From sequence record ON631220.1: a stretch of DNA of 64,000 nucleotides, one strand, 5' to 3'. Below are positions 3,001 to 54,163 of the stretch, piece by piece. Made by a program: the position numbers and the translations under genes. Within the stretch, counting starts at the first letter, position 1. Every line of letters starts with the position of its first letter. A model generated the notes under the pieces. The model saw only the letters and a program-made list of their open reading frames with translations, did not search any database and was not told where the DNA came from.

Positions 3001-3338
3001 CTTGGAAGAAGCTAGATAAATCATTCGATGCATATAGTCTAAAATCAAGTACATTCACTGGTACAGCTTTAACTCTAACACCAGCTAACCAACAGTGCTA
3101 TAGGGTTCAAACTGCTGCTAACCAAACCATTACACTAGAGAATGGACCTGTTGATCGTATGGTAACGGCTGTTCTTGTACTACTTGGTAAGGTAGCTATG
3201 CCAACACTATCTAGTGCAGTGCTACAGTGGAACAATGGTACTCCATTAATAGTAGATGACCTAGGCGATACTAAAACAATTCTTACTCTCCTATGGGACG
3301 GTACTAATTGGGTAGTTTCCAAAGGTGCTGTTATTTAA
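57..3338 (+). CDS. Collagen-like virion fibre protein (phiKZ gp146-like), 1093 aa
   Basis: Many G-X-Y runs (GPEGPQGKDG) alternate with ~60-70 aa globular spacers; the C-terminal part has short W-containing repeats. Followed by a terminator. Confidence 0.85.
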   Translation: MASAFEDYVNGELPKRVSSIDEPTSVVNGHIPVSTGVGLNTTFVDPVTIPGLKGEDGQPGKDGDQGPPGPVGPAINIIANVDLATFEQEIKPLDTHNVGDAWFVEDRLWVWESPLGNEDPPVKGRWVETGSLRGPDGTGLVIRGRWPNNLELPKTESNKPGDAYSWNNQLWAWMLISGNNPPENPTIDDYDWFPVTPQGERGPEGPEGPQGKDGEIGPEGPQGEPAMPFTIKDSLPSPADLPDPSVAKESEAYLVTMEAGKPEHLFIFVKGAWSDLGTFQGPEGPQGKPGNTGDPGPDGKQGEPGPQGRNLEVVKAVETADDLLTTTGVEQYQGVSVRSTNTVYVLTGQDPTVDISWTAMGSFRGPQGPEGPQGKDGDQGIPGEPGAQGKSAFQVALDNGFTGTEGEWLISLHGKNVVITGAVANEAALPADAPDQAAYFTQDTSTLFVKIDGNWVNSGTHRGPKGEDGAPGKDGDQGPEGPEGPEGPQGPAGEPIQIIAAIDTPEDTPPEALADNQWKAYTVKSTGEVFVNMDGSRWTSVGIMAGPQGKPGEGLNIKGVLTDASQLPKKDTDPDLVTGDSYWVETNEGTMLYTYQGQEIDGYIGPINLNGEQGIQGVEGPQGPEGKQGGGLLIIYVGDDAGKPVASADNVGKGIAIHTNTEGQVEVFVSIDTEGTFTWESLGVLAMGPQGPEGPEGKQGVPGMPGKTGQKGERGSSWVILPEGQTAPTSIDGNRGDWCIDKTGTVWYKDANWVVFYKLMSVPVSEVDPEDVDKKMVRYKLGWTELPVDEVPNAEVGVFYGRRKATADGAVEWTAIELPTPAIDAVPNPTVNAQYVRKGIAGGETEWATITFPEIPSDVVRDTAQATKPQGRVAGNWVDVAPLQTDDTLMGMQNGEWVAVPAAVIGEVPSEGATGTNYVREKTASGSKWTPVTIIVDQADATSGQLFLRNAAAKSWTLFQGPNNDVTADGDWVRSRTGTNITWKKLDKSFDAYSLKSSTFTGTALTLTPANQQCYRVQTAANQTITLENGPVDRMVTAVLVLLGKVAMPTLSSAVLQWNNGTPLIVDDLGDTKTILTLLWDGTNWVVSKGAVI

Positions 3339-3349
3339 AACGACATATT

Positions 3350-3380
3350 GCCCTCCCTTCGGGGAGGGCTTTATTTTGTC
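3350..3380 (+). terminator. Intrinsic terminator
   Basis: GCCCTCCC-TTCG-GGGAGGGC followed by TTTATTTT. Confidence 0.85.
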
Positions 3381-3427
3381 TTTTAAGGTTGATTTATTAT
3401 TAACTATACCATCATGCCAGTTATATC

Positions 3428-3464
3428 TAAAAAAAGCATAGAAAGCCCTATTAGAGCTTTCTAT
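3428..3464 (-). terminator. Intrinsic terminator for the minus-strand operon
   Basis: Stem ATAGAAAGC/GCTTTCTAT with a T8 tract on the minus strand, just after the stop of 3471..4187. Confidence 0.7.
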
Positions 3465-3470
3465 TGGGTA

Positions 3471-4187
3471 TCATGGCTTAAACATGGAAAAGTATTCAGC
3501 ATCGATGAAATCAAAGTCGATATTAAGTTTATGCTTTAACTGGAAATCCATGATAATAAACTGTTTATCTTCAACAGCTAATTCACTTACATCTTTCTCA
3601 AATAGCTTTGGACCAATAATCGTAAAGTCAGGCATCAACACTTGTCCTAATTCAAGAACATGGGTTTTACACCATTCTCCAAAATTATACATAATCGCCA
3701 TTGAATAGATAGAGTTTAATCTAGAACAAGTAAGATCTGTTAATGGAGTATTAATCAGGGTGATCTGAATATGATCACCTATGTACTTATGTAAGCAGTA
3801 TAGTAATTCATCTTGAGCATCTGGTGTTAATTCATATGGCCAGATATTAACTTCAAGACATGTTTCAAAATTAGCATTAACTATACCATCTAATCTATTC
3901 AAATCTGATTGGGCTATTAATTGAATAATAAATGGAATGATACCAGTGAATATAGAACTATTGATAGTATCAGCAGTATTTTCACCACCACGTTTAGAAT
4001 AAGCTTCGACAAATTGTTCATTAGTTACTAAACCATCTGTTAGTTTAGTCCAATCATCCATTTCCCTATGCCAATAAATTTGACCATTAGTAACAAGCTT
4101 ATTAGCTGCATCTTTATTTAGTAACCTAATAGTTCCTAACCGTGTATCTAATAGTGAGTCAAGATCAATTAAGATTTTACGAAACAT
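3471..4187 (-). CDS. Conserved jumbo-phage protein, possible HAD-like fold
   Basis: 238 aa ORF with N-terminal ILIDLDSLLD resembling HAD motif I (DxD); other HAD motifs not verified. Confidence 0.45.
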   Translation of the reverse strand: MFRKILIDLDSLLDTRLGTIRLLNKDAANKLVTNGQIYWHREMDDWTKLTDGLVTNEQFVEAYSKRGGENTADTINSSIFTGIIPFIIQLIAQSDLNRLDGIVNANFETCLEVNIWPYELTPDAQDELLYCLHKYIGDHIQITLINTPLTDLTCSRLNSIYSMAIMYNFGEWCKTHVLELGQVLMPDFTIIGPKLFEKDVSELAVEDKQFIIMDFQLKHKLNIDFDFIDAEYFSMFKP

Positions 4188-4683
4188 TATTATTTACCGC
4201 CTTCTTTTTAGATGGCTTAGCTTGAACTGGGATAGATTCAACCATATTAGTAATATAACGGATATTTAAACATTGGCAAATAATCCAAACTAACCAATCA
4301 TTTTGGTATAAAATGTCAGTTAATTCTTTTCGTGGAATTAATCGCGCTAACATTTCTTGGTCAACAATAGTTGAATTAGGCTGATAAGGATAAATAGAAT
4401 TAGCTAGTAATTCCACCACATCTTCCCAATCATTAACAGCCATCTTAAATCGGCTAACTAAACTTAAGATAGGTTGAAGACGATTACCTTTATTACGGAA
4501 TAAATTCCAGATATCCCTAATAACTGTTTTATCAGCAATGTGATACCAATGAGTATTGGTACTCCAGTTATTTAGTAAATCCAAAATATCCGCAATGATT
4601 TCAGCACTGTATCCATTTACTAACTCAGTATTAGATACAATTAAAGCTTCGCACATATCTTCATAAATCTGACGATTATTCAT
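4177..4683 (-). CDS. Hypothetical protein
   Basis: 168 aa ORF tightly packed in the minus-strand operon. Confidence 0.75.
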   Translation of the reverse strand: MNNRQIYEDMCEALIVSNTELVNGYSAEIIADILDLLNNWSTNTHWYHIADKTVIRDIWNLFRNKGNRLQPILSLVSRFKMAVNDWEDVVELLANSIYPYQPNSTIVDQEMLARLIPRKELTDILYQNDWLVWIICQCLNIRYITNMVESIPVQAKPSKKKAVNNNVS

Positions 4684-4685
4684 AG

Positions 4686-5360
4686 TTACACCAAGTTATT
4701 TTGTAGCATCATGCCTTTTAGATAACATGCAAATGTTTTATTAGATTGCACAGTAGCATCATAAGTGGACATGATGGAATCAACAGAAGCACTACCAGTT
4801 TCGATAATAGAGCGGTTCATTGCATTATATGCCTTCTGGTCACCACCACGTAATTTCATGAATTCGATCATGGAATAACGGAGACCTTTTGAAGCGTTAA
4901 CTTGAATCTCTGGTGCAGACATACGTGATCCTTTAGAATCACCAGTTACTTGCCCTGACCTCTGGTCAATCACATGACTAGAACCCGGAATACTTTTCTT
5001 TTTCTCAAGCATCTGTACTTGACGACGGATTGGTATTAAACCAACTAAATGTTTATTAGCAGTTCGATATACCTGGCCAGTACCTGGATCAGTTAAAATG
5101 ATGTGTTGGAATAAATTATGACCAATCGCTTTAGCAACTTTATAATTTCGCTTAATGGTTAATTTAGGCTTAGTGCATAAGTTAGGAGCATATAACGCCA
5201 ACATCTCTTCACCAGAATCTAACTTATTAATCCACTCCTCAAATTCCTCATCATTCATTCGCGCAAACATTTCTTTATAGATATCAACATTACTACTACC
5301 AGGTAGAAACATGTCAATAATCCATAGGCATTCTTTTTCTACCAATTCTCGTTTAGTCAT
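4686..5360 (-). CDS. rpoB: Virion RNA polymerase beta subunit, C-terminal fragment (phiKZ gp149-like)
   Basis: Beta C-terminal-like motifs (IILTDPGTGQ, QRSGQVTGDSKGSRMSAPEIQ, EFMKLRGGD) that complete the beta chain missing from 32217..36572. Confidence 0.8.
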   Translation of the reverse strand: MTKRELVEKECLWIIDMFLPGSSNVDIYKEMFARMNDEEFEEWINKLDSGEEMLALYAPNLCTKPKLTIKRNYKVAKAIGHNLFQHIILTDPGTGQVYRTANKHLVGLIPIRRQVQMLEKKKSIPGSSHVIDQRSGQVTGDSKGSRMSAPEIQVNASKGLRYSMIEFMKLRGGDQKAYNAMNRSIIETGSASVDSIMSTYDATVQSNKTFACYLKGMMLQNNLV

Positions 5361-5392
5361 GGTAATTTCCTTTAAGGTTGTTTAACATACCA

Positions 5393-5713
5393 TTAGCTTG
5401 AGCGAGATACCCCTTGATAAACAGGTATTGAATTCTGGTCAGTACATGGAGGTAACCTATGTCTCTTAAGAATTGGTAATATGTTGGCTAGAAAATTAGC
5501 ATACCATACTTCAAAGGTGACTGAATCATCAATGGTAGTTCTAGCTGTCAATGTCTGACTAGGATATTGAGCTAATAGTTGCTGAAAGCAAGCTGATAAA
5601 GTGGGTACGTCTGTACACACTGGTAATCGACGTAATAGATCTTCTGATAGTTCAACATCAAACATTCGTAGACGTTGACAAAGTGTTAAACGATAATCTT
5701 CTGTAGTTTTCAT
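5393..5713 (-). CDS. Hypothetical protein
   Basis: 106 aa ORF with RBS-like GGA, in operon context. Confidence 0.7.
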   Translation of the reverse strand: MKTTEDYRLTLCQRLRMFDVELSEDLLRRLPVCTDVPTLSACFQQLLAQYPSQTLTARTTIDDSVTFEVWYANFLANILPILKRHRLPPCTDQNSIPVYQGVSRSS

Positions 5714-26202: not shown

Positions 26203-26629
26203 TCCAGAAACCCCATGGGTACAAAATAATTATCCTGTAGATAGTATCATTGTAGATCAGAGCGGTAATACACCGCTCCCTGATCTATTTCAGTTTAATG
26301 GAAAAGAGAAGAAGACCACACTTGATAATGAGAATTTCTTTTCATTCAAAGGTCTTCGGATGTATCTCATCACTGGTAAAAAAGAAAAGGCTTTTCTTCA
26401 ACCAGAAGTCAATTCTCATTATAAACTAGATTATGGTTTAAAATACCAATATGTAGATGGACTTACTAATATCCTTCGTGATACCCTATTATTAAATCTT
26501 AATAGTCGACCATTCGTTCTATTTAAAGCTAAAAATCTCGGCGCTTTATCACTACAAGGTCCAAATCCAACAATTCAGGAAAAAGAATGGTTTGATGTGG
26601 TATGCGAAGTAATTAAATCAATTAGATAG
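26195..26629 (+). CDS. Hypothetical protein (likely start MNNPET)
   Basis: ATG overlaps the end of the previous gene. Confidence 0.7.
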   Translation: MNNPETPWVQNNYPVDSIIVDQSGNTPLPDLFQFNGKEKKTTLDNENFFSFKGLRMYLITGKKEKAFLQPEVNSHYKLDYGLKYQYVDGLTNILRDTLLLNLNSRPFVLFKAKNLGALSLQGPNPTIQEKEWFDVVCEVIKSIR

Positions 26630-26639
26630 GAATAGTGTA

Positions 26640-27566
26640 ATGCAGAATAGTCATAGTTTCGAAATTAGTAAAAAGATGAATTTTCTATTACAGGTAGAAG
26701 CATGTATTAATGTACTATATCAGAAAAGACAGATTATGTCAATTGATCAATTCTCAAAGGAACTGATCAATGAATCTTCAGATGTAGTTAAACAGGCTAT
26801 CACTGAACTATATACAACATATCCATTCCAAGATGAAACTAACCCAAAACGGCAAAACCTTCGTCTAGCTATATTTATCCACGATAATGATGTTAGTTGG
26901 ATTAGTTCAATTCTAGGTGTAGATGAGTTTAAAAATGTTTTAAGGCACGCGGGTATTTTTTATAATTATGCTAGTAGTGCCGAGACTGCTGTTCAGCGTA
27001 ATTATTATGCGTCTTTACCAGATTACCGTGACTACATGTATGCTATCTATGAAGAAGCATTCAACCGCGTTGCCCCACTAGTCAATAAGTATTTAGATAT
27101 CGATGCACATGACAGTGTTTCATTTTTAGAACCACCCCATACTCTACCAAAAAAGAGTGTATCTATTAAAGATATTATTGATCCATTTGGTCCATATAAA
27201 CCTAATTACTATATTAGTGATATTTATAGTGCGCAAGCTACACAAGTAACAGAAAATACATATATCGCAGTTAATACATTTATCCGTACTGCTGTATATG
27301 AAAGACTATGCGCCGAAGGCGATACTGTAGATAAGATTGTTATTTCAGATAAACAAAGCATTATTAATGATGAGGATTATATTAAACTAGTCCAAGATAA
27401 GATTAATGCGTTCCATAAAGAAATGGTAGATAATGATTTTATACTGTATGCACCGCTTAATGGATCCCGTCTAATTTATGTAATGAGGGCTAAATATCCG
27501 ATTAAAGTTACTATTAGTTGTAAAGGATTCAAGCATATTGGAAAATTTATCACTTATAAAAAATAG
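26640..27566 (+). CDS. Hypothetical protein
   Basis: 308 aa ORF. Confidence 0.75.
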   Translation: MQNSHSFEISKKMNFLLQVEACINVLYQKRQIMSIDQFSKELINESSDVVKQAITELYTTYPFQDETNPKRQNLRLAIFIHDNDVSWISSILGVDEFKNVLRHAGIFYNYASSAETAVQRNYYASLPDYRDYMYAIYEEAFNRVAPLVNKYLDIDAHDSVSFLEPPHTLPKKSVSIKDIIDPFGPYKPNYYISDIYSAQATQVTENTYIAVNTFIRTAVYERLCAEGDTVDKIVISDKQSIINDEDYIKLVQDKINAFHKEMVDNDFILYAPLNGSRLIYVMRAKYPIKVTISCKGFKHIGKFITYKK

Positions 27567-32035: not shown

Positions 32036-32233
32036 TTAGATATTGAGGTTCTTCATTAAGCGAGCGTTTAAAGCTGCTGCAATATCAGCCTCAGTTAAAA
32101 ACTCCCCATTCAGAGATGGGGAGCTGGTGGTGCCACCAAGCGATTGTAGAATTGCTTGAGTACCTAGTTTAACAGCAGCATGAAGAACAGCAATGTTCTG
32201 ACCATGTGCTACATTATTACTTAGCTTTTGCAT
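32036..32233 (-). CDS. Small hypothetical protein
   Basis: 65 aa ORF filling the gap between the RNAP beta gene and the next gene; its stop (TAAGGAG) overlaps the next RBS. Confidence 0.5.
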   Translation of the reverse strand: MQKLSNNVAHGQNIAVLHAAVKLGTQAILQSLGGTTSSPSLNGEFLTEADIAAALNARLMKNLNI

Positions 32234-35200
32234 TAGTGTTTCCTCTATATACAGCTACAAGATGTTTTCCAGCTGCCCACAAGATACCAGTTGTTGTAGC
32301 AATGATTTTAGGAGATAGAACCATTCGTTCTTCTACCGATGTATTACCGAATAGTAGATCAATATTACGGCCATCTTCAGTTTCATTACGTCCAGTCATT
32401 ACACGGGAGAATACCGTTTTCATCTGGTTAGCTACTACGCCTTTATCTCCAACACCACATGGGATATCATGATCGATATACACTCGAATAATCATGTGGT
32501 CATATTCTAAGGCTCGTCCTTTCACTCGATAGTTAGCATCTACTTGTCCAGTGAAGGTAGGTTCTTTCAATGATTTAGCTCGTTCAGCACGTTGTTTATC
32601 TGACGTATTAGCTAATGCTTGTAAACTTGGTGTCATATCGTCTATTTCACCATGATAGAAGCATTCAATCTTTGATACTGTACCTACGAGCTTAGCACGT
32701 GGCGAATATGCTGATAGTTTGCGTAATGTCTCAATAGATGCCTCGTCATATAGTGAGTGAGCAGCTGTTTCAGGATCTTCAATTATACATAGAATTGAAT
32801 TTAAGTCGACATGATCCCCAACTTTCACCATATCTCGAATAGTCTGATCAAACCTAACATCGATATTCTTGATTGCAGTTGTTTGAGTATTTAACCTTTT
32901 AGCTAGGTCTTCAGAAATAACTGAACCGTCTTCTAAAGTGTCAAGGTTATCATCAAATGCTACAACAGCCATACAACCGGCTTTCCATAATACTTGCCCA
33001 GGCGTATACCTATCTTCAGAGAAATAACGTTTGTTATATGTGATAGTATCACCACGTTTAAACTTATCACCTTTCTTTAATGAGGTAACAAGAATGTGTG
33101 GGTAGTTAACACCAGCTGCTGTGCCATGAACTGTACCTAATTGATATCCAAATACATTACCATCAGCATATTTAACTTGGATACCATATTCATCAATAGC
33201 TACAACTTCACCATCTTGTTCTGCTGCTACAGCAAAGATAGAACTAGTTCTTTGGGCTATGATTTGTTCATAGCCTGTACGAACTGGTGTAACTGTATAC
33301 CCATCAGCATAAATACCTTGCTGCTGCTGAATTGAGATAAAGTTAATTCGCTTAGGGTCATCATGCTCGGTTGCAACACCAAGCAGTGCACTAGTTGAAA
33401 GTAGTCTAGCTGGTCCATCTGTCTTTGGATCAAACATACGCGTAACACCACGCATGTTTACAAAGTTAGCATCAGGTACTAAGTAAGCAATAACGCCAAC
33501 GTCACCTGAGTCAACAGTTGATTCACTAACCACACCAACATCCGCTTCACCGTAAATACGTGTACGTGCAACCATTGAAGTTGAACCGCGTCCACCATCT
33601 CCACGATAAGTCATCGCTTCTTGTTCACGGATATTTGCAATGGGGTTAGAATCTTCAATAGTGGCTACTGTCGGATCTTGTACAATCTTGCGCCAGATCA
33701 CGTGCGGATCTAACTCGACAGTTTGTACTGATCCACCATTACGCATATTAAATACACGTACCGCTCTATTGAGTTCATTAAAAATAGTCCCTGCCATGCG
33801 CTCATAACCACGATAGCGCATATACGCACCATCTACTTCCGCTGGACTCCAGTCGTTCGTTAATAATTCGACAGACCGATAAAGCAATCCTTCAAAAGTA
33901 GTTGGTTCACCCATCTCCTTAAGTAGACCCTCAGTGATTGGATCGACCCATGCTGAGAAGAATGTGTCAATATCACGTGTAAATCTGTTACTTAATCCAG
34001 CTTCTTCAAGAACCCTGAAGTAAACATCTCGTTTATTGAAATCATAAACAGAATAACGCCGCAGTGATTTATGATAACGTTTGAGTCCACTTAATACAAG
34101 CATTGCTTTATAATCAGCTCGATCAAATACTAGGATCTCATCAGCGAACGCTAATGTATAATCCGTACTATTGACAACAATCCTAGTGCCACGCTGATGA
34201 CGCTGATAATTAACATTCAACTTCTTAAGTAGATTGTTTAAGCCATGGTGATAAGCTAAAATGAAACCTAATGGTAGCTCTTTACCACCAATTGACATTA
34301 GAATAGCTTCTAACGGTGCTTTGGTTAAATCTAAGCCAAGTATATCTGTAATAGTACCAATAGGTTCTAGCTCATTACCTGTTTTCATGTAAAAGATGGA
34401 ATTCTTATCTAACAAGATAGCATCAGTGCCATTGAACCCCACCATTATCAAATCATCAGTTTCATAATCTTCGATATGTAGTCCTTGCTTTGCAAAGAAT
34501 TCATTACGATCTTTGAAATTAAAATAGAACACATTACGATAATTATGGAAGCCTTTGAAAGCTGTTCCTAAAGTAGTGTACACCCTTGGTAGAACATAGT
34601 TGGATTGATCTAATTCAGCATAGGTAACTGAATGTACAGACATATCACTTCCATCTAATGCACGGTTGGTAATCGCTCTGATTAACCAGTTATCAAAGTT
34701 GTTTTCAGCACGTTCAGATCTAGTCACAAAGGTCTTATTGTAATAAGAGGTCAATGCAACTTTACGTGGATTAACTTTACGAATTGGAATATCAGCACGT
34801 TGTAAACGTTGGCGATATGTTACTCCATTAGACATGAACCTACCGTCATTATCAATGACGGGGATACGGAACATCACTTGTGAACTTCTACCACGAATAG
34901 GCTTTAATGTAACTTTGTGGATTTGGTAATGGTTACCAGAATCGCGCACAGTTTCAATTTTGTAATTAGTTACTGATACGCCTTGTTTCTGAACAGATAA
35001 AACACTGTTTAAAATATCTTTCTTTAATAAGACCTTGTTATATTTGCGTTGGATGGCTTTTAACTTACTACCCAACATTGATTTATCAACAATGGTTGGC
35101 TTATCTTCAAAAGTGGTGTCTTCTGGAATCTTAAGATCATCTGGATGATATTCCATCGCCTCAGCGATCGTCATCGGCTCTACTGATTCATCATTAGGAT

Positions 35201-36572
35201 CGGTAAATGGATCAGGTAGACGACGATACATAATCGAATCTTCTTGAGCTTGCTCGAATGTATTCGCAGAAATCATATTCACGCGATACATGTCGTATGC
35301 TTTAGCTCTAATGGCATCGATTAGTTTATCTTCTTCATCAACTTCGGTATTGATAAATAACTCATCTTCTGGTACATCTGCTACGATGAGTTCCTTCTCT
35401 TCTTTAATTTGGCGAGAAGGTGAAGATTCCAGTGGATCTTTTTCAATGATAAGCTTTGTTACCTCAAGATCACTTTCTGGTGGTGGGGTATATGTTACCT
35501 CAATTGCACCAATATCAATTAAGTTAGTTAAGTTAGTTGGGTCAAACTGAACATCATCGATAACATCAACTTCAGTTACTTCTTCTTCAACGTTATTAGA
35601 CTCAACATCCTCAACCTCTTCTACTTCACCTTCTTCATAGCTAACCGGAGTTTCTTCATCAACAATAATATCTTCATTAAAGATAGGCGTATCCTCTTTA
35701 ATTAATGAAGTATTACCTTGGTTATATTCAACCATCGCTGATACTAGTGAAATAAGGCGCCTAGCTATTTGCTGGGTATCATAACCTTTATCATCTTTAA
35801 TTTCTGGATCACGACGCCATTGATCAAGCATCCCTAAGTTAATAACAAAGAATGAGCTTTGTACACGGAATAAAAGATTAATGTTACCGTAATACTTAGC
35901 ATCGATGACATTCATGAAAGAACTTTCACGATCATCAGAAACCCAGCGAACTAAATCAAATATATTTAGAATATCAGGTGTATTGAATTGGTTAGCTAGA
36001 TCTTGAGTTAAACCCCCTCGTAGTTTATTAAAAGAAGAAGGAGGTGGAACTAACTCAGGTAAGTGTACATCAATGAACTGGTTCCAGCCAGGAAAGCGTT
36101 CACATGCAGCCGCTACGCCACTCCAGAATGTACGCATGTCATTGGACCAACGGAACCATGTGGCTTTATAAGAAGCCATATAATTCCATTGAGGGTTAAT
36201 TAAATTATAGTTCATTACCAGAATGTTCTGGTTTGATAATTTAAAACCGGTATCACTGCGTAAAGGTTTAAAGAAACGGTTCTGGCGACGAAACTCTTGA
36301 ATCATTGTTGCTGGGATATTTGAAGTCCTACGTGGATTACCTTCAAATGTAAGCATATCAGTAACATGCTCAATATATACTTTACCTTGATGTTTGGAGA
36401 ATAATGGGTCTGTTTGACTAGGACCCATTACTGCATTATTGCCATCGAAGAACTGATAAATGGATTCGAAAGGTAGATCAAGTTTATTTAGAGCATGCAA
36501 CTTAGGTGACTGAAGTTTAGCATATTCGCGTACACTATAATTTTTCAGAAACTGTGTAATATTTAAGCGCAT
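32217..36572 (-). CDS. rpoB: Virion RNA polymerase beta subunit, main fragment (phiKZ gp178-like)
   Basis: 1451 aa; beta motifs GDGGRG, EDGSVISE and GVGDKGVVANQMKTV; lacks the extreme C-terminus, which is supplied by 4686..5360. Confidence 0.92.
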   Translation of the reverse strand: MRLNITQFLKNYSVREYAKLQSPKLHALNKLDLPFESIYQFFDGNNAVMGPSQTDPLFSKHQGKVYIEHVTDMLTFEGNPRRTSNIPATMIQEFRRQNRFFKPLRSDTGFKLSNQNILVMNYNLINPQWNYMASYKATWFRWSNDMRTFWSGVAAACERFPGWNQFIDVHLPELVPPPSSFNKLRGGLTQDLANQFNTPDILNIFDLVRWVSDDRESSFMNVIDAKYYGNINLLFRVQSSFFVINLGMLDQWRRDPEIKDDKGYDTQQIARRLISLVSAMVEYNQGNTSLIKEDTPIFNEDIIVDEETPVSYEEGEVEEVEDVESNNVEEEVTEVDVIDDVQFDPTNLTNLIDIGAIEVTYTPPPESDLEVTKLIIEKDPLESSPSRQIKEEKELIVADVPEDELFINTEVDEEDKLIDAIRAKAYDMYRVNMISANTFEQAQEDSIMYRRLPDPFTDPNDESVEPMTIAEAMEYHPDDLKIPEDTTFEDKPTIVDKSMLGSKLKAIQRKYNKVLLKKDILNSVLSVQKQGVSVTNYKIETVRDSGNHYQIHKVTLKPIRGRSSQVMFRIPVIDNDGRFMSNGVTYRQRLQRADIPIRKVNPRKVALTSYYNKTFVTRSERAENNFDNWLIRAITNRALDGSDMSVHSVTYAELDQSNYVLPRVYTTLGTAFKGFHNYRNVFYFNFKDRNEFFAKQGLHIEDYETDDLIMVGFNGTDAILLDKNSIFYMKTGNELEPIGTITDILGLDLTKAPLEAILMSIGGKELPLGFILAYHHGLNNLLKKLNVNYQRHQRGTRIVVNSTDYTLAFADEILVFDRADYKAMLVLSGLKRYHKSLRRYSVYDFNKRDVYFRVLEEAGLSNRFTRDIDTFFSAWVDPITEGLLKEMGEPTTFEGLLYRSVELLTNDWSPAEVDGAYMRYRGYERMAGTIFNELNRAVRVFNMRNGGSVQTVELDPHVIWRKIVQDPTVATIEDSNPIANIREQEAMTYRGDGGRGSTSMVARTRIYGEADVGVVSESTVDSGDVGVIAYLVPDANFVNMRGVTRMFDPKTDGPARLLSTSALLGVATEHDDPKRINFISIQQQQGIYADGYTVTPVRTGYEQIIAQRTSSIFAVAAEQDGEVVAIDEYGIQVKYADGNVFGYQLGTVHGTAAGVNYPHILVTSLKKGDKFKRGDTITYNKRYFSEDRYTPGQVLWKAGCMAVVAFDDNLDTLEDGSVISEDLAKRLNTQTTAIKNIDVRFDQTIRDMVKVGDHVDLNSILCIIEDPETAAHSLYDEASIETLRKLSAYSPRAKLVGTVSKIECFYHGEIDDMTPSLQALANTSDKQRAERAKSLKEPTFTGQVDANYRVKGRALEYDHMIIRVYIDHDIPCGVGDKGVVANQMKTVFSRVMTGRNETEDGRNIDLLFGNTSVEERMVLSPKIIATTTGILWAAGKHLVAVYRGNTNAKAK

Positions 36573-36574
36573 GA

Positions 36575-36760
36575 TTAATCCCTTTGTTTGGGTTCCCCAG
36601 TCATGTACCGAAGAGTTAAATTGAGTGTATGGACACCAACACTAAATGCCAGTCGCCCATCGGCATGTATATATGCAATACGTTTCTTAAAGAAAGCATC
36701 TGTTTCAGCGATAGCTTCCTCTGAATAAACAGCGTTAAATGATACAGTGTCCCCGTCAAA
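36575..36760 (-). CDS. rpoC: vRNAP beta' catalytic subunit, exon 2 (FDGDTVSFNAVYSEE...EPKQRD*, 61 aa)
   Basis: Manual translation; starts with FDGD, completing the ...LGAD end of exon 1; stop lies 2 nt before the beta ATG. Confidence 0.93.
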   Translation of the reverse strand, partial: FDGDTVSFNAVYSEEAIAETDAFFKKRIAYIHADGRLAFSVGVHTLNLTLRYMTGEPKQRD

Positions 36761-37241
36761 CGTTATGTTCAGTATCAGTCGTTAATTGATACCCGCACCA
36801 TTACGTGCAGCTCTAGCTCTCGCTAGAAGACCAGACTATATCTTCACCTACAGCATTATCTGTTTAGGTGCTCTCCATTTCGGATCACTTGATCCTACGG
36901 GGCGCAACCCCCTAGTCGTTGAACGTTCCACATATTACAGTTAAGTAACTTAGCGGCTTCGCTGCTGATTGGCCCTACCTTAAGTTTGTCAAGCATTCAT
37001 TATCTACTTTCGTGATAATTGTAGCACTTAAGTCTAACAGGAGTTTCCAGCAATTAGAAGAGTAAAACATATTCATTTCGGAATATGTGGACTTATGTAT
37101 TTTACTGCATAATCTCTAAAAATATAACCATGTTCAGAGTAGGGAACTTTCTTAAATCAAAGATTTTCAATAGATTTATTTAACATGGTTATTACCCTAT
37201 TAATTTTCTATAGGATAACCAGATATACAGTACTACAGTTA
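36761..37241 (-). mobile_element. Self-splicing group I intron (IA2-like), 481 nt, no ORF
   Basis: On the minus strand: 5' splice site after U (GAT^TAA), P AATTGCTGGAAA (37044-37055), Q AATCAGCAGC (36961-36970), R GTTCAACGACTAGG (36911-36924), S GAAGATATAGTCTGG (36831-36845), P7 GACTA/TAGTC, and terminal G before TTTGACGGGGAC. Confidence 0.95.
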
Positions 37242-38708
37242 ATCCGCACCTAATGGCGCTAGAATAGATGGTGATATGGATACAGAATCATGCCACTGTG
37301 CAGGTTTATTTAGTTCAAATACTGGGAACTCTAGCGCTGGTTCCAATGCATCGTCCCGTTCCCATTGTTCATTTAATGGGTAACGTAGTTCACCTACTAC
37401 AGTAGTTTTAACGTACATTTTACAAGGAATAGAACTATTATAGTTTTCTACAGGGTAACGTGTAACGAATGCTGAATTGGTTCGCCACATATTTAATCCA
37501 CTGAGGTAAACTAACTCAGCGTATGTGATAGGTCTTACAAACTTCTTATTTAGGTTTGTAGGTAATTCGTCAATATTGCGGAATATCCTGAAATTTTGTT
37601 TATCATCGACGTAGATAAGTGCTAAATAATGATCAGCAATTTCAATTGCACGTGAGCGTTTTTCAATGACATCTAGCTCATTGATGATTTGTTCTTGCCC
37701 TTCAGGAGTTCCCCATAAATCCATATCTTCGTTAGAGATATCGACCCATTCTAAACGTAGTGTTTTCTTATTGATGAGCTGTACAGTGTTAGTAACTGTA
37801 TCAAACACTTCACCAACTACACCTTGCCTTAGTGCAAAGATTGTACGCGGTGCAACTGAACGAGCTGCTTGATGTAAGCCAACTACGGCATCTTTGAATG
37901 TTGGTCGATTAGGTGAATCAAGATCAGCAGCATTAGTATCTAGCGAACTAATGACATTACGTGTACCATTGGCAATACGACGGGATGCCCATTTAGATTG
38001 AATGTATCCACGTTTACCGGATAGCAGTCGTTCATAATGTTCATAAATAGCTAATACGGTGTTTTGCATTGCTACTCGTTTGCGATCATAGATACTCAAG
38101 TCATCATTTGGTCCAAAGCTATCAGGTACACCAAACGACTGATTTAATAGATACCTATAGTGTTCATTGATCTCATCCATCTCAACACGATTATTCTCAT
38201 CAATCTCTGCATCACGATAAGCGGCTGGTGTTACAAGCATGTCTTTAAAAATACAGTTATCTTTATATTTTTCGATTAATTGTAACCTTGATAGCCGAAC
38301 CCCTGACTTAGTGGACCCAAAGTCAATTCGTTTCCAGTTATCAAAAAAGAATGTATAACCAGTTTTACCAGTTAGTTCATCGGCGCGGATAAAATCTTTA
38401 ATAGATTCGTCAAATACTGCAAATGCCTTACCAAGAATAATTTCTTCATAGAAAGCTTTTAATTTAATTAAGTTTCGATATACAGCTGGATGGATAAGTT
38501 CTAAACCTAAATGGATATATCCAAATAAACTCTCACGATCAGTTGATCCAACTCTTCCAAAAATGGAAACAGAGAACAAACCATCTTCATGAAAGTTACC
38601 ACCTAAACCTTCAAATATCTCATGACTCTTTACTTGACCTAAGAACTTTAATTGTTCTTTAGTGGGAATAAGTAAAGAAATATTAAAAGGAACTAATGCC
38701 TTCTTCAT
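37242..38708 (-). CDS. rpoC: vRNAP beta' catalytic subunit, exon 1 (phiKZ gp180-like; spliced product 550 aa)
   Basis: Beta' motifs EDGLFSVSIFG, GYIHL, LLSGKRGYIQ and RNVISS; ends LGAD at an in-frame stop that belongs to the intron. Confidence 0.93.
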
Positions 38709-49548: not shown

Positions 49549-49953
49549 ATGTCCATCGAAACCACCAAGAAGTTTATCGAAACCCACAACCTAAATGAAA
49601 AAGTAAGCATGTCTGATGCCGGGGTATTTGAGATCCCTGACGGTCTATTTGAAGAAGTTGTTCTTCAACCAGCAGGCGTTACTGCCGAGCAGTATGCGCA
49701 GGTACATGAAGGTGCAGGTCAACTAGCAGCGGCTGTAAGTTATGTATTTGCTGAAAAAGCCGCACCGTACATGAAAGAAAATGAAAGCATTGCTGAGCTT
49801 GGTTATTCTTATAATGCAGGCGGTGCAACTGTTTCTGGTATCATTGATCGCAGTGGTGCTCTTGTAACAGTTGTAGATACCAAATATAAGAGTAGCGCTA
49901 TGACTGACGTTGTTGAAAGTGTAGCCAGCTTCTTTGAAGATGTCAATAGCTAA
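49549..49953 (+). CDS. Acidic hypothetical protein
   Basis: 134 aa; codon usage richer in C-ending codons, suggesting high expression. Confidence 0.75.
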   Translation: MSIETTKKFIETHNLNEKVSMSDAGVFEIPDGLFEEVVLQPAGVTAEQYAQVHEGAGQLAAAVSYVFAEKAAPYMKENESIAELGYSYNAGGATVSGIIDRSGALVTVVDTKYKSSAMTDVVESVASFFEDVNS

Positions 49954-49983
49954 TATATACTAGCTATTTCAATATAATAAGAT

Positions 49984-50014
49984 CAGTGGGTGCATTGCCC
50001 ACTGGTCATTTTTT
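49984..50014 (+). terminator. Terminator
   Basis: CAGTGGG-TGCATTG-CCCACTG followed by GTCATTTTTT. Confidence 0.65.
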
Positions 50015-50074
50015 ATATTAAAAAAAGTTTAATGGCTAAATAGTACATTTTAATAATTTAAGGAACTGAGTATT

Positions 50075-50404
50075 ATGGCGGATCAGAATTTATTTAAAGA
50101 AGTTCATGGTGATAATAAAAAATCACATTCTGACAATATCAAATATAATCTAGTTATTGCAATTGTACAAACTGCCCGTCAAAAAGCCATTTCTCAAAAA
50201 GTATTGATTGATGATGTTTTCACTAAACTAGGCATCTCTGATGAACTTAGTGAGAATATTAAAATGTTTAATTTACCAGCTTTAAGCATTGATGTATTAG
50301 TTGATGTTCTATATAGCTTAGGTTATAGAGCTTCATTAGAATTATCGCAACAAGATTTAGAAGATAATGTTGAAGCAGTAATTAAACTTAAGATGAGGGA
50401 TTAG
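50075..50404 (+). CDS. XRE/HigA-like helix-turn-helix protein
   Basis: ISQKVL..KLGIS...LSIDVLVDVLYSLGYRASL pattern. Confidence 0.55.
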   Translation: MADQNLFKEVHGDNKKSHSDNIKYNLVIAIVQTARQKAISQKVLIDDVFTKLGISDELSENIKMFNLPALSIDVLVDVLYSLGYRASLELSQQDLEDNVEAVIKLKMRD

Positions 50405-50406
50405 TA

Positions 50407-51465
50407 ATGAATGGTTTATTTGTATGTATCGAAGGAACTGAAGGTGTTGGTAAAACAACTGTTACAAAGATGGTTGTTGAGGAACTACGTAAGCGCAATT
50501 ACGATGTAGTAGCAATGCGTGAACCAGGTGGTACAGCTACATCGGAAAAGATTCGACAAATGTTAATTTGGCCAGAATTTAAAGATGAAGTTCGTCCGCC
50601 AGAATTCGATGTATTGATGCATAGTGCAGGTAGGATGCTTAATGTAGAAAACATTATTCGACCTGCTTTAAAAGATGATAAAATCGTTATCACTGAACGT
50701 TTCATTGCATCTACTTATGCTCTTAATGTAGTACCTTTTGAAGAAACTAATCCATACCTATCAAAACTATTTATGGATATTCTTCAAGGAACACTACATT
50801 CTATTCCAGAACCGGCTACTTTCTTTTTAACTGCTCCTGAAGAAGTTCGTAAAAAACGAATTGAAATGCGCGACCGAGGTCTTGACTATTATGAGTCTAA
50901 GGGTTCCAGTTACTTTAATAAAGTAGATGAAGGTTATGGACGCTTAATTAATCAACCTAGTTCAATTGTTGTAGATACCAATCGCGATCTAGACATCATT
51001 GTTAATGAGATTGTTGAATCAATTATTTTCCTGCGTGATAAACAAAAAAATAAACAATCATCATTTGATGAACAACTAGCTAAAACTACAACTAGTGATC
51101 AGTTTGATGATAGTGTAAGTTCTGAAATACCATGGAATGATGAACAGCAAGAAGATACTGTCGCAACAACCGATGACACTATTAATTTTGATCTAGATGC
51201 TGAAATCAGTAAGTATCTTGATGAAAATATTATCCCTCAGTTATTCGAAGGTGATGATCGTTTCCTTGCATCTGGTAAGGTTGTGGCACAGAAGTACTGC
51301 CAACGAGTTTACGATCAGCTACCTGATAGTGAAAAGCACAAGATGTTCTTAGGTTCAAATAAAGAACGTCTAAATCAACAAATTCATAGTTTACTTTACT
51401 ATGGACATCAATTAGATGCATTCATTGCAGAAAATGATCTAATTGGTAAAACACTCTGGAAATAA
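50407..51465 (+). CDS. tmk: Thymidylate kinase with a C-terminal extra domain
   Basis: P-loop EGTEGVGKTT, REPGGT and ERFIAST; about 140 aa extension after the kinase fold. Confidence 0.92.
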   Translation: MNGLFVCIEGTEGVGKTTVTKMVVEELRKRNYDVVAMREPGGTATSEKIRQMLIWPEFKDEVRPPEFDVLMHSAGRMLNVENIIRPALKDDKIVITERFIASTYALNVVPFEETNPYLSKLFMDILQGTLHSIPEPATFFLTAPEEVRKKRIEMRDRGLDYYESKGSSYFNKVDEGYGRLINQPSSIVVDTNRDLDIIVNEIVESIIFLRDKQKNKQSSFDEQLAKTTTSDQFDDSVSSEIPWNDEQQEDTVATTDDTINFDLDAEISKYLDENIIPQLFEGDDRFLASGKVVAQKYCQRVYDQLPDSEKHKMFLGSNKERLNQQIHSLLYYGHQLDAFIAENDLIGKTLWK

Positions 51466-51502
51466 AATTAATTTATTATTTCGTAATTGGTGAAGAAATT
51501 AA

Positions 51503-51754
51503 ATGAGCACTACCCTGACTCTGAAAGAATCTAAATACATCCCTGCAACTAATCTAGATAACCTAGAAGATTATATTGGTCGTACTTTTCTAGTCGAACG
51601 AAATGGCGTGTCTACAGCGCATAAGCTAATTAAACTCTCTCGCCGAGATGTTTATCTTGGTTATCCGGATGGTAGGGAAGATTCATTTACATTGTCTATT
51701 AATAAATTCCGGAAGTTTTATAAACTAGCACCATCTAATCGCGATAAAAAATAA
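51503..51754 (+). CDS. Hypothetical protein
   Basis: 83 aa ORF followed by a terminator. Confidence 0.7.
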   Translation: MSTTLTLKESKYIPATNLDNLEDYIGRTFLVERNGVSTAHKLIKLSRRDVYLGYPDGREDSFTLSINKFRKFYKLAPSNRDKK

Positions 51755-51767
51755 AATACGATATAAT

Positions 51768-51795
51768 AGAGTCCCCATTACGGGGACTCTTCTTT
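51768..51795 (+). terminator. Terminator
   Basis: AGAGTCCCC-ATTAC-GGGGACTCT-TCTTT. Confidence 0.8.
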
Positions 51796-51823
51796 ATAAT
51801 TTTTTTGTTAAAAGGTATATCAA

Positions 51824-52264
51824 GTGTTCAATAGAATTGTTAGAGCTTTTCACATTATCGATAAAGACCAATCTAAACATGGTGAACTAGATCTACCACA
51901 ATGGCCAGCCTATGTATCGGTTACTCCTAAAGTTATCGATATTAGGGATAAAGAATTTAATTATCATGGTTTTATTTCACATATCAATGCCCCTTTAAAA
52001 GTTATAAAACCAGATGAATATATTAAAGCCAGGTATACTTTATCTTCATACTTTATCCATCAGAATGAAGGAGATGATGATCCAGTTGATGCACCAGGTT
52101 TTAGTATTGACATTGAATACAGGTTAGTTACTCAAAATACTAAGACATGGCATTTAGATATCAACATCATCACTGATAAATCAATTAGTTACAATATCGA
52201 AAGTATTCTAAATGCGGAATTCATGTGTCAATGTCCATTTAATCTTTATATAAACGGTAAATAG
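51824..52264 (+). CDS. Hypothetical protein
   Basis: 146 aa, GTG start. Confidence 0.65.
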   Translation: MFNRIVRAFHIIDKDQSKHGELDLPQWPAYVSVTPKVIDIRDKEFNYHGFISHINAPLKVIKPDEYIKARYTLSSYFIHQNEGDDDPVDAPGFSIDIEYRLVTQNTKTWHLDINIITDKSISYNIESILNAEFMCQCPFNLYINGK

Positions 52265-52291
52265 CTAATCATTTATAATAGAGGAAAGAGT

Positions 52292-53083
52292 ATGTTTAAA
52301 TCCTTGAACTTTAACTACACCACTCAACCTTCTACTGAAGGTATCTGTTTGTATATCGGTCATGGCGATATTGGACTACTTGAGGGTAATAAATCTTCAA
52401 CTGGCATTACTAAGAAATTAGAACAATGTCCTTATTACCTACATGTTACTGTTGGTGAATCAAATACAGCTAACCAATTGACCATTACTGGTTATACTAA
52501 TAACCAACCTAACATCCGTAGTTGGCATGGTCAAGAAGCTATGGACATTCTGCTGAATAATATCAACAGCAATAACAATGTGGTGCAACGAGAACTTAAC
52601 TTTGAAGTACTCATTGAATCAGTTGAACGTAAAGACCCGCGCGTTATTATACTAATGGCGCTAGGTGCACTTCCATCTCAAGATTACCCTGGTCATTTTG
52701 ATGATTTAGCATCCGATAAGCAACTATTCAAACGGGTAGGCTCTTTCATTGATTATAATGAAAAAGAATATAGTGATACATACAATACCATTACACGCAA
52801 ATTATTTAACCTGTGTGGCTGTGGTTATCCAGAAGCGGAGTTGCGTTATATTGATGATGTATTGGATATATATCGCCAAGGTCGGAATACTTCTAAACGT
52901 AATGAATGTAATAAGAAATATGGGTTTGGTCCAACTACATTCATGCTACATTATCTAGATAGTCTTGGATTTGCCGAGCATGGTACAGGCGCTGCTGGTT
53001 GGCTGCTCGATGAAGGTGCATGGGTTAATGTATTAGTAAAATTGGCAATTAAGGAAACCGAGGGTGGATGCACTGATGTTTAA
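52292..53083 (+). CDS. Hypothetical protein with a C-terminal CGCG...EHG...W phage domain
   Basis: 263 aa; GAGGA RBS; LCGCGYPE...LDSLGFAEHGTGAAGWL. Confidence 0.7.
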   Translation: MFKSLNFNYTTQPSTEGICLYIGHGDIGLLEGNKSSTGITKKLEQCPYYLHVTVGESNTANQLTITGYTNNQPNIRSWHGQEAMDILLNNINSNNNVVQRELNFEVLIESVERKDPRVIILMALGALPSQDYPGHFDDLASDKQLFKRVGSFIDYNEKEYSDTYNTITRKLFNLCGCGYPEAELRYIDDVLDIYRQGRNTSKRNECNKKYGFGPTTFMLHYLDSLGFAEHGTGAAGWLLDEGAWVNVLVKLAIKETEGGCTDV

Positions 53084-53801
53084 ATTATCGATGCGTGTAT
53101 TTTGTGCGGTATTTCTGATTAGTATCGGCATGTGTACTAAAGCTAGTGTTAATTACGAACCACTTGCTTTTTATGGTGTACCACTATTCTACTCTAATCA
53201 TACTCCGCGAATTGCTCCATGTAACTTCGACCAACAATCTGGACTTGGTAGTTGCGGATGGACTAGTTATCCAGAATATTCAGTTATTCCATTAGTTAAA
53301 CCAAGTGATCCAACTAAACAGATTCTTGTTAATTATTCGATGTATCAAGAAGTCATCTGTAATGATGAACAATGCTTTACTTCTGATTATCATGAGCCGT
53401 ATGGTTTACTTTCAGGATTTAAAGGCACCACATATTGGTCTGTGCCAACTGGTTATTATCTACTAAATGGACCCAATGGTGTACATGGTGTTAAGTTTGG
53501 TAACGGACCATTAAAAGATAATTATCCTATTCGTGATATTTACATGATAAATAATGATAGAGATATTGATGGCGAATACCTCTCTCTAAAAAATACTAAG
53601 GGAATTTATAATGTGATGTGTAGTCCATTGACCCAGATGTGTAAATATTTGGGTAAAGAGTACACTCTATTGGAACTAAACCAATTGATTCCTTTTGTAA
53701 AGACTACCATTTGTGATGAATACCTTTGTTACATCGATAATAGTAAAGGCAAGGTTGCAGGCATAAATCCAAAACGAAAGGATATTTATGAGGGGTTATA
53801 A
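53076..53801 (+). CDS. Exported Cys-rich protein with a signal peptide
   Basis: N-terminal basic plus hydrophobic leader; paired Cys motifs occurring in two repeats. Confidence 0.65.
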   Translation: MFKLSMRVFCAVFLISIGMCTKASVNYEPLAFYGVPLFYSNHTPRIAPCNFDQQSGLGSCGWTSYPEYSVIPLVKPSDPTKQILVNYSMYQEVICNDEQCFTSDYHEPYGLLSGFKGTTYWSVPTGYYLLNGPNGVHGVKFGNGPLKDNYPIRDIYMINNDRDIDGEYLSLKNTKGIYNVMCSPLTQMCKYLGKEYTLLELNQLIPFVKTTICDEYLCYIDNSKGKVAGINPKRKDIYEGL

Positions 53802-54163
53802 TGAATATTACCAATATAAAGCTCATCCAAACGATGGATGATGTATTGAAGGAACTCACGAAATATCATGATAACCTCAAGCCTCATGTAGATATTAAAA
53901 TAGAGGTTTCACCGTGGGGCGCTAAGTGTACACTCTTGTCTGAGGATACGGTTCGTAAGGTAGTTGTTGAAATCAATATAGATAAACCACTAAATATGTG
54001 CGTAACCTATTTCTTTGATGAGAAAGTGGTTACTAAGATTAACAAAGATAATTCACATCACCATACTGAATTAGCTAAACAAATAAATACGTTCTTTTCG
54101 GATACAAGTATCCCAACACGAACATTCGATTACCATGGGTTCCTAGATTATATTGGATTCTAA
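53801..54163 (+). CDS. Hypothetical protein
   Basis: 120 aa; TAATG coupling; GAGG RBS. Confidence 0.75.
   Translation: MNITNIKLIQTMDDVLKELTKYHDNLKPHVDIKIEVSPWGAKCTLLSEDTVRKVVVEINIDKPLNMCVTYFFDEKVVTKINKDNSHHHTELAKQINTFFSDTSIPTRTFDYHGFLDYIGF

Follow-up and report, generated by a model that had tools for sequence, protein, structure and literature searches.

The window, a 64,000-nt stretch of record ON631220.1, carries on its minus strand a homologue of phiKZ gp180, the gene for a β′-N-like subunit of the virion RNA polymerase (RNAP), split in two by 481 nt with the hallmarks of a group I intron (Table 1). Exon 1 is directly abutted by a TAA (37241..37239) that in the ORF reading is the opening, in-frame codon of the intron, and after G36761 the frame resumes as FDGDTVSFNAV, FDGDTVSFNAVYSEEAIAETDAFFKK. 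The boundaries are set independently by the intronless phage KTN4, which reads GGGGGCGGAT/TTCGACGGGGAC (the slash marks the insertion site) within a single 550-aa ORF. Joined, exons 1 and 2 likewise give 550 aa, colinear with the KTN4 ORF and with positions 1-538 of PHROG 2986. The original prediction had exon 1 ending in LGAD and TAA, an insert of 481 nt with a terminal G, and resumption at FDGD; its coordinates are exact to the base, on the minus strand. No sense-strand ORF of at least 40 aa lies within the 481-nt intron, and an antisense ORF of 52 aa returned no family matches. Independent translation of exon 2 was rejected because the exon has no start codon: an in-frame TAA lies at -24 upstream of FDGD, with no start codon between the two.

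The downstream gene, assigned through PHROGs, is the homologue of phiKZ gp178, which has been described as the β subunit (PMC11620839). Only 2 nt separate the exon 2 stop from the downstream ATG (36572-36577), and a Shine-Dalgarno-like AAAGGGA stands shortly before it. This leaves almost no gap between the two virion RNAP genes, and translation of the gp178 homologue may be coupled to that of the spliced gp180 homologue. At the equivalent locus, phiKZ is annotated with three genes, gp180, gp179 and gp178. The region matches the Pseudomonas phages OMKO1 and fMGyn-Pae01 (Phikzvirus) at 100% identity; against phiKZ, which has about 960 extra nt there, identity over the rest is 92%. Because GenBank records ON631220 and OR228460 both list the 489-aa exon 1 product alone, leaving the intron and exon 2 blank, the catalytic subunit is mis-annotated as truncated.

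Table 1. Features of the interrupted virion RNAP locus, in window coordinates.
Feature	Position	Strand	Details
Exon 1, virion RNAP β′-N-like subunit gene (phiKZ gp180 homologue)	37242..38708	minus	489 codons; C-terminal SILAPLGAD
Group I intron	36761..37241	minus	481 nt; without functional ORF; last nucleotide G36761 is the omega-G
Exon 2	36575..36760	minus	61 codons plus TAA (36577..36575); without its own in-frame start codon
Downstream gene, phiKZ gp178 homologue (β-like virion RNAP subunit)	32217..36572	minus	1451 aa
gp179 remnant	37073..37186	minus	ATG at 37186; codons 1-16 joined, in frame, to the final 21
Divergent mosaic segment	36972..37625	minus	exon -384 to intron nt ~270; contains the endonuclease deletion
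P1 5′ strand	37241..37245	minus	exon GGAU plus first intron U; splice-site U is 37242
Probable internal guide sequence AGUCC	37089..37093	minus	intron nt 149-153; directly 5′ of P2; G150 opposite the splice-site U
L1 domain	37096..37237	minus	stem intron 5-21 / 127-146; hairpin 25-49; 11-bp helix 50-60 / 108-118
Ribozyme core (Rfam match)	36811..37135	minus	71/72 pairs canonical, P7 included
P2	37088-37067	minus	
P3	37062-37057 / 36876-36871	minus	
P4	37052-37047 / 36968-36963	minus	
P5-P5a	37042-36972	minus	
P6-P6a	36962-36923	minus	
P7	36917-36913 / 36838-36834	minus	
P7.1	36912-36899	minus	
P7.2	36895-36882	minus	
P8	36870-36845	minus	
P9	36827-36812	minus	
P9.1 and P9.2 hairpins	36772..36810	minus	3′ of the Rfam match

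The identity of the host gene is supported by profile searches. PHROG 2986, 'RNA polymerase beta subunit', is matched over positions 1-484 by exon 1 (E 3e-205) and over positions 485-538 by exon 2. Pfam returned no matches for exon 1, exon 2, the intact KTN4 protein or the gp178 homologue, and single-sequence phmmer searches of the PDB with the polymerase pieces were equally empty; a profile of 13 sequences was needed. Built from 13 uninterrupted homologues, this profile matches in the PDB the N-terminal β′ subunit of the AR9 non-virion RNAP (nvRNAP; 7S00/7S01, E 1e-15) and bacterial β′ (E 5e-8), and its DFDGD aligns with the DYDGD of AR9. D489, D491, G492 and D493 are invariant across the 13 homologues, at identities down to 39%. 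By homology, the protein belongs to the multisubunit RNAP β′ family (N-terminal part, the double-psi β-barrel bearing DxDGD, with the Mg-binding aspartate triad), and Gp180 of phiKZ has been described as a virion RNAP subunit with an essential Mg-binding DFDGD (PMC10612078). Judged by these alignments, the intron sits between the first D and the FDGD of the Mg-binding motif.

Rfam assigns 37135..36811 on the minus strand to its group I intron family, RF00028, at 88.4 bits (gathering threshold 50; E 3.2e-21) over model positions 1-253, the full length of the model, and this is the sole Rfam family found in the whole 64 kb. The P, Q, R and S blocks reported in the original prediction are visible in this alignment as AAUUGCUGGAAA, AAUCAGCAGC, GUUCAACGACUA and AAGAUAUAGUC, with P7 formed by GACUA and UAGUC. 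To these we added an alignment of 12 family members, comprising four alleles at the gp180 site, paralogues in the nvRNAP β′ gene, and introns from 201phi2-1, the PhiPA3 helicase gene, Serratia 2050HW and an Aeromonas phage. From it RNAalifold recovers P2, P3, P4, P5/P5a, P6/P6a, P7.2, P8, P9, P9.1 and P9.2, and 51 of its 74 pairs show a compensatory change in at least one of the 12 sequences. The P3/P7 pseudoknot is beyond RNAalifold, which places a spurious local hairpin there, and P7 was scored separately by script; being invariant, P7 is uninformative on covariation. Between the window and phiKZ alleles alone, compensatory changes occur in P5 (one), P5a (four) and P7.2 (one), and the fold of the whole intron lies 4.5 standard deviations below shuffled controls (z = -4.5).

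A 33-nt insert between P7 and P3′ forms two hairpins, GGGG..CCCC (P7.1) and GGAUC..GAUCC (P7.2), the latter covarying. These mark the intron, on sequence grounds, as subgroup IA. The element has a conserved core, covariation, an omega-G and a host frame restored on its removal, and its ribozyme appears intact.

The pairing at the 5′ splice site is less certain than the core. In an unconstrained minimum free energy (MFE) fold running from exon position -12 to P2, exon GGAU and U1 pair with AGUCC, and the 147 nt between these strands fold into an L1 domain with three arms meeting at a three-way junction (z -3.3). The 11-bp helix of this domain pairs the old endonuclease start-codon region, AACCAUGUU, with GAACAUGGUU from the 3′ part of the ORF, and contains one compensatory difference, U-A in the window and C-G in phiKZ. 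The same arrangement recurs in paralogous introns with other exons, where the guide directly 5′ of P2/P3 complements each intron's own exon: GUUUC for the exon end GAAAU in KTN4 nvB1, GUUGGG for CCUAAU in KTN4 nvB2, and AUACAGUC for GAU/UGUGU in 201phi2-1. The KTN4 nvB2 guide, just 5′ of P3, is the best exon complement across that whole 1.4-kb intron.

The window P1 core is short (5 bp), and the search for a P10 gave nothing longer than 2 bp. Because G.U-anchored runs of at least 4 bp occur at six places in the intron, we rate the distal AGUCC only as the probable partner, favoured over a local helix. In the latter, exon GCGGAU plus UA would pair with intron nt 7-15 (UAGUACUGU) around a bulged A, with a U.G at the splice site. 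This local helix has the attraction of eight pairs plus the U.G at the cleavage site in the window. We nevertheless find it unlikely: its G becomes A in the phiKZ, Koomba and T2P alleles, leaving a U-A at the splice site, the MFE structure spends its nucleotides in the long L1 stem, and the KTN4 nvB2 paralogue has no room for such a helix. Of the P1 originally proposed, a U.G at the splice site is still predicted, and a partner about 150 nt into the intron is preferred to the local bulged helix that was presumably meant.

Comparison across relatives reveals three states of the site. Using the phiKZ locus as query, we surveyed 47 related GenBank records. The site is empty and the flanks contiguous in 35 of them, KTN4 among these, with its single 550-aa protein and the DNA sequence GGCGGAT/TTCGAC. 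Ten records, representing nine genomes (phiKZ and eight others), carry a 1443-nt intron with gp179, a 357-aa ORF that matches Pfam HNH_3 (E 7e-9); both this match and the phiKZ annotation bear out the original prediction in its mention of a phiKZ HNH gene at this position. The remaining two, OMKO1 and fMGyn-Pae01, have the 481-nt intron lacking the endonuclease. Over about 50 kb collinear with KTN4 (2.1% divergence), the intron is the sole insertion of at least 50 nt. The short allele is identical in two independent isolates and in contigs from three further public sequencing runs, all of propagating phage; these contigs match the window over exon 1 and the first 312 intron nt, deletion point included. 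All three (from Logan assemblies ERR2184201, SRR14182600 and SRR14182599) end at intron nt 312, near the onset of paralogue-shared sequence. A repeat has probably interrupted the assembly at this point, and short-read assemblies may routinely fragment there.

The short intron retains traces of the gene it is missing. It aligns pairwise to nt 1 to ~100 and ~1060 to 1443 of the phiKZ intron, with 960 nt of ORF gone (we used the pairwise alignment, a four-sequence MAFFT alignment having misplaced the 5′ intron part of the window). The gp179 remnant reads MLNKSIENL, stop, FKKVPY-SEHGYIFRDYAVKYISPHIPK, stop: an in-frame deletion has taken out 320 gp179 codons, and codon 10 has changed from GGA to the nonsense codon TGA (37159..37157). 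The HNH region is absent, and what is left does not amount to the functional homing endonuclease of a mobile intron. The 3′ codons of the remnant overlap both the 5′ strand of P2 and the AGUCC that probably serves as guide. Because codons 1-16 and the last 21 codons of gp179 persist, we read the short intron as a decayed allele of the phiKZ gp179 intron whose endonuclease was lost. The original prediction, that the intron 'lost, or never had' an endonuclease, is thereby narrowed to its first half, as both gp179 ends are kept. Its broader claim of a group I intron without an endonuclease gene, splitting a catalytic motif, finds support in the Rfam match, the empty site and the remnant ORF alike. 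Tolerance of a natural gp179 deletion fits the viability of phiKZ with engineered orf179 deletions (bioRxiv 10.1101/2025.11.23.690004). A literature search found no published description of the endonuclease-less allele.

The deletion sits in a mosaic. The last 384 nt of exon 1 (37625..37248) differ from KTN4 at 62 positions (16.1%), with four amino-acid changes, whereas the preceding 1083 nt show three differences and exon 2 with the downstream gene about 1.5%. This divergent tract begins 7 nt from the 5′ splice site and has abrupt ends at exon -384 and intron nt ~270. On the intron side, nt 1-100 show 18 differences from the endonuclease-carrying alleles and the P5 extension is replaced, whereas nt 271-481 differ from the T2P allele at one position. 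phiKZ has the distal third of the tract with an identical left boundary: it carries the window variant at 23/23 sites from -384 to -262, after which its sequence is of the KTN4 type. In Koomba the tract is missing. Along the ~50 kb compared with KTN4, there is one other patch as divergent. Window positions 26401-26900, in hypothetical-protein genes (KTN4_212/213), are 16-26% divergent, and positions 3001-3400, at the 3′ end of a tail-fibre gene (KTN4_182), are 11-12.5% divergent.

This pattern looks like recombination or co-conversion from an unsampled lineage. Because the divergent tract spans both the flank and the deletion, a recent deletion in a phiKZ-type copy is excluded as the origin; instead, the sequence comparison indicates that the 5′ half of the short allele, deletion included, recombined in from a more divergent lineage. 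We did not find the donor in GenBank phages, IMG/VR or JGI metagenomes. Searches of IMG/VR with a deletion-junction pattern and with an empty-site pattern in the OMKO1 flank gave no matches of that kind, and two 5′-junction patterns in JGI metagenomes yielded neither a donor nor a version of this allele containing the homing endonuclease gene. Among the paralogues, the nvRNAP intron of phage 124.01 (124.01_nvB2, L006 1945-2326) is near-identical to the gp180-site alleles in P5-P6 and resembles the KTN4 nvRNAP intron in P7.1-P8, and the P5 extension of the window resembles that of KTN4 nvB1. Modules seem to be exchanged between paralogous introns.

The same site is also occupied in distant, uncultivated jumbo phages. 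Among IMG/VR homologues (38-98% identity), 20/22 have an uninterrupted GAD/FDGD (or YDGD or HDGD in place of FDGD) followed by a 56-61-aa tail. The other two, L025 and L026 (~40% protein identity), have group I introns (79-82 bits) at the identical nucleotide, GAT/TTC. The L026 intron contains a 597-aa ORF for an HNH/I-HmuI-like protein whose homology to gp179 begins at residue 1 (E 1e-42), and the L025 intron (4462-5589) holds a 208-aa open ORF equivalent to the L026-type protein minus residues ~141-519, deleted in frame with the HNH core. The L025 deletion independently repeats the endonuclease loss in the window.

These observations can be combined into a single account, in which an old unit of intron and HNH gene at D/FDGD, common to jumbo phages of only ~40% protein identity, has lost its endonuclease at least twice independently, on each occasion through an internal in-frame deletion sparing both ends of the ORF, and in which the retained ORF ends and the recoded flank were selected. 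They could be kept as RNA structure for P1/L1 folding and, with the recoded 5′ flank of OMKO1, as an 'immune' allele against gp179-type endonucleases during co-infection. We consider this joint account rather improbable; if true, the endonuclease-less intron would be a defensive element in phage-phage competition.

Our overall explanation, in which we have high confidence, is that a self-splicing IA-type group I intron with a decayed endonuclease lies in the gp180-homologue gene. In the pre-mRNA, the ribozyme would fold and the exon end GGAU would pair with the guide, most likely AGUCC. Free guanosine bound at P7 would attack after U37242, the terminal G36761 would enter the G site, and the exons would be ligated to GCGGAU-UUUGAC. 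The spliced product would be a 550-aa subunit with an intact Mg-binding loop; on unspliced RNA, translation would end at the opening UAA, giving a 489-aa product missing two of the three aspartates. The in-frame deletion of 320 codons and the nonsense mutation removed the HNH endonuclease, with the ORF ends that double as structure (the start-codon helix, the guide and P2) being kept, and the short intron would be unable to home by itself.

From the sequence we infer that the window intron splices in vivo, and splicing can soundly be taken as obligatory for the virion RNAP. The opposing reading is that the insert stays unspliced, the gene being broken or split and the RNAP working without a contiguous DFDGD. 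It draws on Putzeys et al. (2024), who obtained zero spliced reads for the predicted phiKZ gp56, gp72 and gp179 introns by ONT-cappable-seq (PMC10914365); this negative result most likely reflects a limit of coverage or mapping. Such a reading has to contend with the invariance of D491, G492 and D493 in 13 homologues, the missing start codon of exon 2, a ribozyme core conserved with compensatory changes, and phages that are viable. It must also accommodate a sister polymerase in which gp71-73 occurs as one fused subunit (PMC8287921) and the 201phi2-1 intron, for which there are two spliced reads and proteomic support (PMC11512511). We therefore consider a permanently unspliced insert extremely improbable.

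If the intron does splice, it probably persists because the catalytic motif would survive only a base-perfect deletion; imprecise intron loss being lethal, persistence needs no selection. This weighs against the idea, raised in the original prediction, that selection keeps the endonuclease-less intron for splitting, and thereby shielding, the target of gp179-type endonucleases in co-infecting relatives. Shielding is plausible by analogy with Birkholz et al., who reported that intron endonucleases mediate competition between co-infecting chimalliviruses (PMC11620839); the same report describes a recoded target, with 17 silent changes, built in the expectation of interfering with gp210 recognition. 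In nine related genomes the site holds a gp179 that looks intact. In the 5′ flank of the window, 62 changes, most of them silent, begin 7 nt from the insertion point, and such heavy synonymous recoding might add resistance. Recombination or co-conversion involving a divergent donor would, however, explain the recoded tract equally well, and part of the tract is found in phiKZ too. Moreover, some HNH intron endonucleases, such as I-HmuI, nick intron-containing alleles too, which we count against shielding. Taking these points together, we think it unlikely that shielding is what maintains the intron.

A different possibility, also raised in the original prediction, is that splicing sets how much active virion RNAP is made and, by way of translational coupling, governs the β-like gene as well. 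Unspliced RNA would halt translation 667 nt ahead of the start of the gp178 homologue, and the tight spacing of the exon 2 stop and the next ATG could provide the coupling. The downstream gene nevertheless has its own Shine-Dalgarno-like sequence, and the intron is absent from 35/47 related records, so no essential regulation depends on it. Because most relatives do without the intron, a regulatory role is unlikely, and we give this possibility considerably less weight than shielding.

The phiKZ gene 180 intron itself is already known; its prediction by Mesyanzhinov (2002) is cited in PMC10914365, PMC11512511 and bioRxiv 10.1101/2025.11.23.690004. It shares with the window intron the gene, the site (GAT/TTY) and a homologous ribozyme, guide, P2-P4 and 3′ half. 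It differs in being 1443 nt long with a 357-aa HNH protein, against 481 nt and a remnant of 37 codons containing a stop. Over the 5′ 100 nt the two introns share 82% identity, and the window has a different P5 extension, in which pairing is maintained by compensatory changes. The introns of PhiPA3 gp210 (gp211/209) and 201phi2-1 gp273/274 belong to the same family and also split conserved aspartate motifs in virion RNAP genes, yet they lie in the gp178-homologue gene, the downstream neighbour of our host gene. We accordingly rejected the intron of Birkholz et al. (2024; PMC11620839) as the same site, since it lies in the gp178 homologue. PhiPA3 gp210 actively nicks DNA and has been shown to take part in phage competition (PMC11620839), an activity of which the window intron would be incapable. 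The 201phi2-1 intron (87 Rfam bits) is also short, about 336 nt, apparently without an endonuclease gene.

Paralogues lie in the KTN4 nvRNAP β′ gene (L007, KTN4 49626-53890). Their ribozyme cores are 72-78% identical to that of the window and their 3′ ~110 nt (P9-P9.2) almost identical. They are inserted at HRN/PTLQR and N/ADFDGD (L007 1053-2289 and about 2404-3779), each with its own guide and HNH ORF, and the N/ADFDGD intron thereby interrupts the paralogous polymerase only 6 nt away from the corresponding catalytic position.

The short allele has a counterpart in phage T4, whose nrdB intron was reportedly recognised by Eddy and Gold in 1991 as a natural deletion derivative of the RB3 intron, which encodes full-length I-TevIII. 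Both are phage group I introns in essential genes, with an endonuclease ORF crippled by internal deletion and with splicing kept (in the window, as predicted), and in both cases close relatives carry a mixture of intron-plus, decayed and intron-less alleles. The host gene, phage family and endonuclease family differ, and the window ORF lies in the P1 loop, with its ends overlapping RNA structure. Goddard and Burt are said to have set out, in 1999, a homing cycle of invasion, endonuclease decay and loss. The short allele is a textbook late stage of that cycle.

These results correct the public annotation of OMKO1 and fMGyn-Pae01, in which the catalytic subunit stands truncated at 489 aa and no intron is marked. 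OMKO1 has seen therapeutic use. A 481-nt ribozyme with a known junction is also a much easier substrate for splicing assays, which bears on the negative phiKZ result. All three stages of the homing cycle (empty, with endonuclease, and decayed) are now found at one site among near-identical nucleus-forming phages; the tract left by recombination can be seen as well, and a distant lineage provides an independent parallel. The locus offers a well-defined natural setting in which to ask whether competition among chimalliviruses is shaped by intron endonucleases and by immunity to them.
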